Shown: positions 22,501 to 25,500 of the stretch, piece after piece
Numbering within the stretch: the stretch's first letter is position 1
Layout: the number at the start of each line of letters is the position of its first letter
Assembly (NCBI RefSeq): GCF_006345805.1
Contig: NC_043005.1
Span: 22,382,001-22,446,000 of the forward strand
DNA: 64,000 nucleotides
Origin: Octopus sinensis
Lineage: Eukaryota
Reading direction: 5' to 3'
Notes under the pieces: model-generated
Databases searched by the model: none
What the model was told of the DNA's origin: nothing
The model's input: the letters and a program-made list of their open reading frames with translations, nothing else
Position numbers and translations under genes: made by a program

Positions 22501-25500
22501 AAAAAATGGAAAATTAAGAGTGGATATATATTTTATGAGTACTGAGTATTAGGTCTAGAAAATTGTGCATAAAGCATATAAACTGTATATATATATATAT
22601 ATATATATATATATATATATATATATAAAGTACATTAAGTTATCATCGTATTCCATTTTCTTTCAATTTACAATAAGTAGCAGATAAGCGACTATCTTTC
22701 CACACTGACATAATACAAGCTACGCTTTCAGATTCTTGGGATAAAGTTTTCAGAAATAACCTAATAGCTTTACCATTAATTCAGTGAGATATTCACGGGT
22801 CCCGCTAGTATTTGTATAAAGATGATACTCAAATATAGCTGTGTATTCTATATAAGATGTTTGAAAGAAAAGTTTTCCCATATATATATATATATATATA
22901 TATATATATATATATATATATATATATATATATATATATATATATATATATATATATATATACATATATATGGGAAAACTTTATATATATCATATTAATT
23001 AGAGAAAAACCACTATTATGTAATTCAAACAATGATAGACATAAACTAAATCATAAATAAAATATAAAATATATTATAAAACATATAACTAGATCACAAA
23101 AAGTACAAAAAATGAATATACAAAATATAAGTAAAAAGACTACGTTTATTTAATTTTATTAATCTGTATTTATTATATGTGAACTAAAATCTAAAAGTAT
23201 TAAGTGTGATTGTTTTGTAAAATAGTTTGTAACATAAAATATTAGAGTATAACTAGTGAAAAGATATTTTATAGTTTGTTAATGCTATTCTCAAAACTAA
23301 AATATATCTTCACAGATAAATACATTTTTCTATCTATTTACTCTATTTTTTTACCTTAGGTTTTTAACATGAAAAATGTATTATAGATACCTGGTCCTAC
23401 TTTTAAGTTTCAGATTTAGTTAACGGAGTTTCTTCTATAAGAACAATCATGATTTTATTTCTTTAAGAAATATTGTTTAATTCTATTTAATTATTTATTT
23501 AACTATTAATGTTATTATTGTTGACCTGAGGAGTGACTATACTTTTAAACTGAATTGTTTTTCGATTAAAATTAAATTTAATTGTAATTCAAATTGAAGT
23601 TATAGCCACGAAACGTACGTAGTCTTTTTTATTATATATTGTTTATTCATTTTTTGTACTTTTTGTGATCTAGTTATATGTTTTATAATATGTTTTATTT
23701 TTCTTTAGAATATATAAATCTATCATTGTTTGAATTACATAATAGTGATTTTTCTCTATATATATATATATATATATATATTATATATATATATATATAT
23801 TATATATATATATATATATATATATATATATATATATATATATATATATATATATAGGTTAAAGAACCCCTTAAGGCACAAGTCTGGGCAAGGTCGTTTA
23901 TGGAAGACTGGCTGTTGCCCATGCATACGAGCCTCCCCACACCACGCAACCGATGTTATCCAAGAGAAAGGCAAAGCTGACACAGCTTTGCACTAGTGAC
24001 GCCGCAACTCATTTCTCCAGCTGTGTGAATAGGAGCAACGTGAAATAAAGTGTCTTGCTCAAGAACACAATACACTGCCCGGTCCTGGAATCGAACTCAT
24101 TACCTCATGATTGTGAGCCCGATGCTCTAAACACCGAGCCATGCGCCTTTTATATATATATATATATATATATATATATATATATATATATATATATATA
24201 TATATAGAATGAAGTGTTTTTTACAGAAAAAAAAAATTCCATCAAAAAATGTGGCAGCATATTAAAATACCTTTACGGTTAAAATTATAAACAACTTATA
24301 AATAAGAGCTAAAGAAAATTATTTCAATGCCAATATGCTGATAACAGACTTTTAAATCGTCAATTTCCACATATTATTTACTCGCAACAGAAAAAAATAC
24401 GAAGAACTGAAATCGGGGAAAGCTGGCCGATAGAATTTAAAATAAAAGTTCGTTATTTCTATATTGAATCAATTTCGGAATTAATCTCATAATAGATTCT
24501 TTCCTCTTCAGTAGAACATACGAAAGGATATAATTAAGATATTTACATGCGCCCATGGAAAGAAGCCGAGGCAAAAATCATGAGTACATATGAGTACCCT
24601 AGATATATCTAAAAATAAAATTCTTTGGTCAGCCCCAGCACAACGTGTTGACTGTTCTCCACTACAGGTTATAGTGGTTACCAGTCCCTATAGCGAGTAA
24701 TAATATGTCTACTACTAATATAGGTTGAAGTTCTTTTACAGAAAAAAAATTCCATCAAAAAATGTGGCAGCATATTAAAATACCTTTACGGTTAAAATTA
24801 TAAACAACTTACAAATAAGGGCTAAAGGTCCGAAAACATACAACAGAATAGACTCCGCTTAAGGCATCTAATGTGCCTGCCAAGTAGTGGTGTTAAACGG
24901 GCTGACGGATTAAGTCTACCACCCAAGTAGACCAAGATGGAGTTTGAATTTAGAACATCAAGAGATGGAAAAAATACCACAACGCTCTGATTCATATTTG
25001 CTGGTCTAATACTTTTAACTAGTACTTTATTTTTATTGGTCCCGGAAAGACGAAATTTAAAGTTGACCTCGGCGGGATTTGAACTCAGAATGCACTGCAA
25101 GGCATTTCGTTTGTAAAGTTCTAACAATCTTGCCAATTCATCGCTTTGGACATAAGTAAGTAGTTTTAGCAGTTTTATTGTGGTGGTGTGCCAGATTAAA
25201 TATTTTGCAGTATTAAGTTTCATTTCTTTATGCTCAATTTTGGTCAAGGTCAGGTTTGCCTTTCGTCTGTGCAGATTTTATAAAACACCACAGACCGAAG
25301 ACTGTATTATCCTTCTTCCAAAAATGTTAAGCAGTGTACCAAAACTCTTATTAATAGCGCATCCGAGACACCAAAGCTAGGTTCTTTGGGGACGTAATAT
25401 TTTTTACCTTATTCTTCTGATTTAATAACAGGTCTTCCTTTAAGTCATAATGGAAAAATATAATTAAATTTTAACTTTAGAATACGAAACATATATTGCA

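Follow-up and report, generated by a model that had tools for sequence, protein, structure and literature searches.

It is well known that type I hammerhead ribozymes of Penelope-like elements (PLEs) and of retrozymes occur widely in invertebrates, and one lying in an octopus intron is not surprising. The locus considered here is a stretch of 64,000 nucleotides (nt) of Octopus sinensis (assembly GCF_006345805.1, contig NC_043005.1, positions 22,382,001 to 22,446,000 of the forward strand), which in its full length is called the window and in which positions are counted from the first nucleotide. It contains on its minus strand a cathepsin L gene, gene A, whose fourth intron carries a hammerhead, ribozyme 1; a homologous hammerhead, ribozyme 2, is found on the opposite strand a short way past the 3' end of the gene, and the two belong to two copies, L1 and L2, of one repeat family. 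Ribozyme 1 is predicted, with a probability of about 0.8, to be the self-cleaving module of a small retroelement that is non-coding, has a unit of about 505 nt and belongs to the PLE or animal non-LTR (long terminal repeat) retrozyme type, and to be a passenger in the intron.

PLEs are characterized by partial head-to-tail copies (pseudo-LTRs), by inverted copies that lie next to them and are truncated at the 5' end, by a hammerhead close to the 3' end and by insertions that are mostly single and truncated (PMC8557442, PMC4209133). Insertion biased to (TA)n has been reported for the Naiad clade of PLEs, a clade without canonical hammerheads (PMC8557442), and the genome of Octopus vulgaris carries Penelope families (PMC13282606). 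Like the hammerheads of PLE pseudo-LTRs (Cervera & de la Pena 2014, PMC4209133; Craig et al. 2021, PMC8557442), the octopus motif has the type I topology, with a helix II larger than usual, a helix I of only 4-6 bp and a helix III that is small and palindromic; both are found mostly as dispersed single motifs from truncated insertions and vary highly with compensatory changes. The octopus element also resembles PLEs in its partial tandems, its inverted 5'-truncated copies and its (TA)n context. However, it has no attached open reading frame (ORF) for a reverse transcriptase (RT) or GIY-YIG domain and is likened to PLEs by arrangement alone. Moreover, the octopus hammerhead lacks the unpaired base between A9 and 10.1, its helix II is broken by a 2x2 internal loop after 4 bp, and its helix III is a real 3-bp stem, whereas that of PLE hammerheads has 0-2 bp.

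It has been argued that animal retrozymes derive from PLE pseudo-LTRs as non-autonomous elements (bioRxiv 10.64898/2026.07.22.740005), an origin that is proposed for the octopus element as well, and retrozyme RNAs are reported to be highly self-paired (PMC7229834). Animal non-LTR retrozymes (Cervera & de la Pena 2020, PMC7229834; Li et al. 2026, 10.64898/2026.07.22.740005) and the octopus element have in common a non-coding AT-rich unit with one type I hammerhead, head-to-tail repeats, a self-paired unit RNA (predicted for the octopus) and scattered monomeric "offspring" copies. They differ in that each unit of a retrozyme array has a ribozyme, whereas L1 comprises about 1.2 units and L2 an inverted arrangement. 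The octopus unit of 505 nt exceeds the 170-400 nt typical of invertebrates but falls inside the range of vertebrate families (51-972 bp).

Also comparable are Schistosoma Sm-alpha and newt satellite-2 (Rfam Hammerhead_1, RF00163), which are likewise type I hammerheads in repeated, transcribed, non-coding animal elements, with a weak helix III and dimer-assisted cleavage, both of these being predictions on the octopus side. In contrast to them, the octopus helix II has about twice the length, sequence similarity does not extend beyond the core, and RF00163 misses the octopus motifs at E<=10. The amniote HH9 and HH10 ribozymes (de la Pena & Garcia-Robles 2010, EMBO Rep, cited in PMC7229834) are also sense-strand intronic type I hammerheads of probable retroelement origin; they are conserved at one intron position across vertebrate classes, whereas octopus ribozyme 1 is absent from a congener and deleted in paralogues.

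Two hammerheads of one build

Ribozyme 1, read on the minus strand from 24516 to 24457, is UUCUA C UGAAGA GGAAAGAAUCUAUUAUGAGAUUAAUUCC GAA A UUG AUU CAA U A UAGAA. The invariant positions are complete (C3, U4, G5, A6, N7, G8 and A9; G12, A13 and A14; the A15.1-U16.1 pair; A as H17), and since helix I is open-ended the ribozyme is of type I. Helix II, closed by G10.1-C11.1, is composed of 4 bp (GGAA/UUCC), a 2x2 internal loop (AG/AA), 5 bp (AAUCU/AGAUU) and a 6-nt loop (AUUAUG). Helix I can be extended past a 4x4 internal loop (UAUG, 24520-24517, and AUAA, 24456-24453) to a distal stem of UUCG (24524-24521) and CGAA (24452-24449), and this internal loop is a possible "loop 1" that would face the internal loop of helix II and have a tertiary role. 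A sequence-only reading of the locus had claimed that every core nucleotide, all three helices and the G10.1-C11.1 pair are intact, that cleavage is predicted after minus-strand position 24462 and that the motif lies in the sense strand of intron 4, about 1.1 kb downstream of the exon encoding the catalytic Cys. The layout described above matches it to the base and gives the same cleavage site; the gene model agrees too, ribozyme 1 beginning 1066 nt past exon 4 in the sense strand of the 3.9-kb intron, with the 5' splice site about 1.1 kb upstream and the 3' splice site about 2.8 kb downstream.

A strict descriptor (the core, plus at least 5 bp in helix I and at least 4 bp in each of the other two helices) matched only ribozyme 1 in the window and gave no match in 300 shuffles, in which dinucleotide content was preserved inside 2-kb blocks of the window. 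When G-U pairs were permitted and the helix minima were relaxed to 4/3/3, there were 19 matches in 1500 shuffled windows (about 0.013 per window) versus two in the real window, which are homologous to each other. A minimal hammerhead descriptor without the helix III requirement, applied to the window and to five octopus loci, detected no additional motifs.

The second of the two matches, ribozyme 2, reads UUAUCA C UGACGA AGAGAAGGUUCUUAUGAACUAACUCU GAA A UCG GGUC CGA U A UGGUAA. Its helix II consists of AGAG/CUCU, an internal loop AA/AA, GGUUC/GAACU and a loop UUAU, with A-U as the 10.1-11.1 pair. The two ribozymes are thus of one unusual build, a helix II of 4 bp, 2x2 loop and 5 bp together with a short helix III, and over both of them the helix lengths are 5-6 bp (I), 4+5 bp (II) and 4 bp (III). 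Furthermore, homology extends into the surrounding regions, which align colinearly at about 65-70% identity, beginning about 55 nt upstream of the ribozyme and continuing to the 3' end of the element.

Base pairs were counted by a script on a hand-made, structure-guided alignment of ribozymes 1 and 2, that is, of two independent lineages. Among the 18 pairs of helices I-III, 8 are unchanged, 2 are changed on one side, 8 are changed on both sides and still paired, and none is broken, the identity at paired positions being 50%. The core is identical at 10/11 positions, the sole difference being the free position N7. When changes in the 3' strands were simulated at random, all pairs were preserved in none of 200,000 sets. 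In addition, the distal extension of helix I shows one compensatory change against ribozyme 2 (U-A to C-G). The covarying pairs together with the constant core mean that the motif of ribozyme 1 is a real hammerhead, and the comparison is strong evidence that the hammerhead fold has been under selection in the element family.

The repeat element and its history in octopuses

The arrangement of the two copies (Table 1) is that of PLEs in several respects. At L1 a partial copy stands head-to-tail with the full unit, as in the pseudo-LTRs of PLEs, and at L2 the forward copy carrying ribozyme 2 is joined to an inverted 5'-truncated copy, the adjacent inverted form known from PLEs. The inverted-repeat arms of L2 (15739-15880 and 15986-16127) are 142 nt long and 94% complementary, and the left arm shares homology with the 3' part of L1. 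As to insertion at (TA)n, L2 is flanked by such tracts on both sides and L1 has one at its 3' end only. The L1 unit folded as a circle has an energy of -115.6 kcal/mol (z = -4.4 versus shuffles), with 61% of its bases paired.

A further peculiarity of L2 is a duplication of the 29 nt that surround the cleavage site (ATCGG..CCNATATGGTAATAACGGAATT), with copies at 15869-15897 and 15986-16014, 117 nt apart. The first of these copies directly abuts sequence that is normally about 60 nt upstream of the ribozyme, and the duplication looks like a template-switch or circle-junction scar.

Two other classes of element were considered and rejected. A miniature inverted-repeat transposable element does not fit, L1 having no terminal inverted repeats and the family occurring in direct and inverted form, and a tRNA-derived short interspersed element (SINE) does not fit either, as ARAGORN sees no tRNA-like head. 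A protein search with a 50-aa ORF running through L2, aimed at further genomic copies, found nothing. A family-specific DNA pattern gave 12 matches in metagenome contigs, all of them chance matches without hammerhead helices and some apparently in bacterial coding sequence.

The history of the insertions can be read from the close relatives of gene A, five further loci being reached through the 90%-identity cluster of its product. The cathepsin L genes whose products share at least 90% identity have expanded recently, in tandem, on one chromosome: in O. sinensis there are three of them (XP_029640526.1, XP_029640642.1 and XP_029640615.1) inside about 135 kb, O. vulgaris is represented in the cluster by CAI9728804.1 and CAI9728801.1, and Octopus bimaculoides by a single gene, XP_014770604.1. 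The O. bimaculoides orthologue (XP_014770604.1) has neither L1 nor L2. Its intron 4 aligns at 88-92% on either side of a clean empty site, the junction of CTCTTGATGTTCTA and TGCGCATGC, and the missing block of 2.56 kb comprises L1, (TA)n, a tRNA-like SINE and other repeats, with TA at both O. sinensis junctions; where L2 would lie, O. bimaculoides has a short TA run following the poly(A) signal. By contrast, the O. vulgaris orthologue (CAI9728804.1) has both, with identical ribozymes 1 and 2 and an L1 region 98.4% identical. The identity of ribozyme 1 between the two species is uninformative, because the flanks differ by only 1.6% and about one change would be expected per 60 nt.

The remaining three genes, O. 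sinensis XP_029640642.1 and XP_029640615.1 and O. vulgaris CAI9728801.1, also have L1 and L2, so that both elements are common to tandem paralogues in the two species. In all three, L2 shows one change in loop III, and a shared deletion of 99 bp in L1 has taken out ribozyme 1 with 17 nt upstream and 22 nt downstream. The edges of the deletion show TTAA microhomology (24435-24533 of the window compared with 12473-12481, 11502-11510 and 12507-12515 in loci L004, L005 and L006, respectively). Each of the three genes is annotated with a full-length product of 324 aa, and introns with and without the ribozyme are otherwise about 96% identical among paralogues. The near-exact removal of the ribozyme may be a coincidence or may reflect selection against a sense-strand ribozyme.

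O. bimaculoides split off 13-33 million years ago (PMC13282606). The most economical history would be that both elements were inserted after this split, that gene duplications followed and that one lineage then lost the ribozyme. According to the mechanism proposed here, L1 and L2 would have been inserted at (TA)n tracts after the O. bimaculoides split and before the tandem duplications. In the life cycle of the element, the ribozyme would cut longer-than-unit or read-through transcripts at a fixed site, probably most efficiently as a pair of copies joined by the quasi-palindromic helix III, and the resulting unit-length RNA would be ligated and then reverse-transcribed by a PLE enzyme supplied in trans. 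The helices would covary because selection acts on this transcript-trimming step of the element. In the cathepsin intron, ribozyme 1 would be a passenger, its lone copy cutting the nascent intron slowly or never.

Several points weigh against this interpretation. The Rfam hammerhead models (Hammerhead_1, _3, _II, HH9 and HH10) gave no match at the gathering score, nor at E<=10, with queries of 601, 86 and 91 nt covering both ribozyme sites; weak snoRNA-like Rfam matches in these searches, made at four scales, were dismissed as meaningless. There is no PLE RT or GIY-YIG ORF in the window, and a Pfam scan of 10 of its long ORFs revealed LINE-type (long interspersed element), Tc1-type and histone domains only, so the PLE assignment rests on architecture and not on homology to a PLE. 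Two independent copies of the family, L1 and L2, were examined. Furthermore, L1 has about 1.2 units with one ribozyme and L2 one complete ribozyme; since neither locus has two complete tandem ribozymes, neither is a working retrozyme, and both are at best monomeric derivatives. Finally, the absence from O. bimaculoides could in principle be a deletion rather than a lack of insertion. As to the first point, the miss is likely owed to the long, interrupted helix II, and since a family with a helix II of 4 bp, loop and 5 bp escapes Rfam, Rfam-based counts of cephalopod ribozymes are probably too low.

The lineage-specific block of intron 4 holds further repeats. A tRNA-like SINE (GGCGCATGGCTCGG...GTTCGATTCC...) occupies 24007-24150 of the minus strand directly after the (TA)n of L1; ARAGORN calls no tRNA in it, and relatives are found 3' of the O. 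bimaculoides orthologue (locus L002, 12423-12629). A pair of inverted repeats of about 250 bp (22869-23145 and 23617-23856, 87% identical), which may be another foldback or inverted insertion, has relatives in intron 5.

Possible cleavage in the intron and the competing explanations

Among the alternatives, the one that survives best is that ribozyme 1 is a real transposon hammerhead which would be silent as a single copy at physiological Mg2+ and would need a second copy to form helix III; this has somewhat less than an even chance. The nearest-neighbour minimum-energy fold of the 60-mer is not the hammerhead (-10.2 versus -6.7 kcal/mol for the hammerhead fold) and pairs the core positions U4-N7 with part of helix III. 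In every context folded, the predicted pairing probability of helix III is about 0.01, and helices I and II of L1 are predicted at 0.6-0.9 in most contexts. The helix III hairpin of the monomer has 0.0 kcal/mol in L1, that is, it is not predicted to form, and -2.3 kcal/mol in L2, whereas the helix III self-dimers have -8.7 kcal/mol in L1 (with one U.U mismatch) and -17.0 kcal/mol in L2 (12 bp). A quasi-palindromic helix III is a mark of type I hammerheads that work best as dimers, and PLE-type hammerheads show no or very low monomer cleavage in vitro (PMC4209133). On the other hand, nearest-neighbour models disregard the tertiary structure of the hammerhead core. In addition, for retrozymes of coral and mussel single cloned repeats suffice for self-cleavage, with rates of about 0.8 and 0.1 per min, respectively, and helix III of invertebrate hammerheads has been likened to a two-base-pair stem with a tetraloop (PMC7229834); that of ribozyme 1, with 3 bp and the 15.1-16.1 pair, is not shorter. 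As helix III is short and nearly palindromic like that of dimer-favouring ribozymes, activity of the single copy in the pre-mRNA is uncertain. The sequence-only reading had taken stem III as closed and the ribozyme consequently as able to cleave as a monomer; the stem is closed indeed, by a 3-nt loop, but with the pairing probability and the favoured self-dimer described above, monomer cleavage is doubtful.

Slow intronic ribozymes are tolerated by RNA polymerase II (Pol II) transcripts through exon tethering, whereas fast ones abort processing. Any effect on gene A therefore depends on the cleavage rate.

A far less probable alternative is that the ribozyme has been co-opted, cleaves the pre-mRNA of gene A co-transcriptionally, sets or regulates the output of the paralogue and has been retained for that. 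Its sense orientation inside a 3.9-kb intron, the whole core and helices, the identity of ribozyme 1 in O. sinensis and O. vulgaris and a helix I extending past an internal loop that could contact that of helix II are in accord with co-option. However, the orthologous O. bimaculoides site lacks the ribozyme, the three close paralogues in which it is deleted are each annotated with the full-length product, the identity between species says little at a flank divergence of 1.6%, and the helix III hairpin of the monomer is predicted to be unstable. Moreover, the depletion of retrozymes from Xenopus introns suggests that such insertions are tolerated or harmful, not recruited (bioRxiv 10.64898/2026.07.22.740005). 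The host gene is evidently not dependent on ribozyme 1, because the orthologue and three paralogues do without it. Ribozyme 1 is transposon-borne, lineage-specific and dispensable, and a conserved regulatory role finds no support. The earlier suggestion of a gene-specific and possibly regulatory ribozyme gives way to a mobile-element repeat, with a second copy 3' of gene A, an empty site in O. bimaculoides and deletions in paralogues; conservation at the orthologous site, which had been proposed as a check, extends to O. vulgaris and fails in O. bimaculoides and in the three deletion-bearing paralogues.

It is similarly improbable that ribozyme 1 is active in the nascent intron and tunes or lowers the mRNA of gene A, the 99-bp deletion having been favoured as relief of this cost. 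If that were true, the tandem cathepsin L genes in O. sinensis and O. vulgaris, some of which have a self-cleaving ribozyme in the intron and some not, would amount to a natural allelic series and would reveal how Pol II transcripts handle co-transcriptional cleavage.

A chance match within AT-rich intron sequence, for which the short, AU-rich helices, the lack of an Rfam match and a folding z-score of just -1.24 for the 60-mer might speak, is practically refuted by the homologous ribozyme 2, with its 8 double compensatory changes and a core unchanged except at N7, as well as by the scarcity of matches in the shuffles.

Under the preferred interpretation, a retroelement-borne passenger, L1 and L2 present tandem and inverted insertion forms adjacent to each other, with datable empty sites in a congener. 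In addition, paralogues with and without the ribozyme in near-identical introns offer a ready comparison for the host cost of an intronic self-cleaving RNA.

Coordinates and other features of the window

Table 1. Positions of the ribozymes, the element copies and gene A in the window
Feature	Position	Strand	Remark
Hammerhead ribozyme 1 (type I)	24457-24516	-	sequence read, descriptor match, covariation with ribozyme 2
Ribozyme 1, helix I	5' strand 24516-24512, 3' strand 24461-24457	-	5 bp, open
Ribozyme 1, core CUGAAGA	24511-24505	-	
Ribozyme 1, helix II hairpin	24504-24477	-	
Ribozyme 1, GAA (G12 A13 A14)	24476-24474	-	
Ribozyme 1, helix III	24473-24463	-	A15.1-U16.1 and 3 bp (UUG/CAA), 3-nt loop AUU
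Ribozyme 1, H17	A24462	-	predicted cleavage between 24462 and 24461
Ribozyme 1, extended helix I	24449-24524	-	read from sequence
Hammerhead ribozyme 2 (type I)	15944-16004	+	descriptor match with G-U pairs permitted; antisense to gene A
L1, full element unit of about 505 nt	24207-24711	-	begins ACATATTATTACTCGC, ends ...CTTCATTC(TA)n; ribozyme 1 mid-unit
Partial upstream copy, 3'-terminal ~115 nt of the unit	24712-24827	-	head-to-tail with L1; 93% identical to 24314-24202
(TA)n microsatellite at L1 3' end	24151-24206		
L2, second family copy	15646-16146	+	just 3' of gene A on the other strand
(TA)n left of L2	15585-15644		
(TA)n right of L2	16147-16202		~20 nt beyond the gene A AATAAA
Block of intron 4 missing from O. 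bimaculoides	22394-24950		2.56 kb
Segment deleted in paralogues	24435-24533	-	99 bp; ribozyme 1, 17 nt upstream, 22 nt downstream
Gene A, exons 1-3	34732-34595, 30642-30532, 29403-29260	-	
Gene A, exon 4	25708-25582	-	catalytic Cys; upstream edge of intron 4
Gene A, exon 5	21645-21545	-	downstream edge of intron 4
Gene A, exons 6-7	18089-17823, 16515-16417	-	

Gene A was found by an exon search in the window to be a seven-exon cathepsin L gene. Its spliced model is 100% identical to XP_029640526.1 (cathepsin L1-like isoform X1, Octopus sinensis), whose gene is placed on CM016867.1 (assembly GCA_006345805.1) at about 22.40-22.42 Mb. The stop codon is at 16416-16414, and AATAAA follows at 16229-16224 of the minus strand. 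A paralogue 75% identical to gene A, gene B, lies at 46-64 kb of the window; its paralogous intron could not be aligned to that of gene A beyond exon-proximal sequence and gave no empty-site test.

Intron 4 of gene B contains an H2B-like histone ORF in antisense (57785-58141, plus strand; Pfam Histone, E = 2.7e-21), whose C-terminus diverges after ...EVQTAV and which is probably a retro-copy or pseudogene, and in the same intron there is an N-terminal fragment of a Tc1/mariner transposase (HTH_Tnp_Tc3_2; 56594-56989, minus strand). LINE remnants are found at 6304-6774 (plus strand), as an AP-endonuclease domain ORF within a GC-richer stretch of 6-12 kb, and at 27920-28378 (plus strand), as a weak RVT_1 match in intron 3 of gene A, antisense to the gene. 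An ORF at 14273-14632 (minus strand) has no Pfam match and by eye resembles a LINE C-terminal region.

A dispersed repeat of about 75 bp occurs at 25016-25090 and at about nine further sites (29902, 39581, 39831, 40015, 41415, 42445, 47466, 47648 and 51008), on both strands and with copies 75-87% identical. Moreover, the density of microsatellites is extreme across the window, with (TA)n, (CA)n and (ATCT)n-type runs such as those at 15500-15645, 20289-20845, 21667-21800 and 27163-27400, and microsatellite runs explain most of the length differences among the octopus loci compared.

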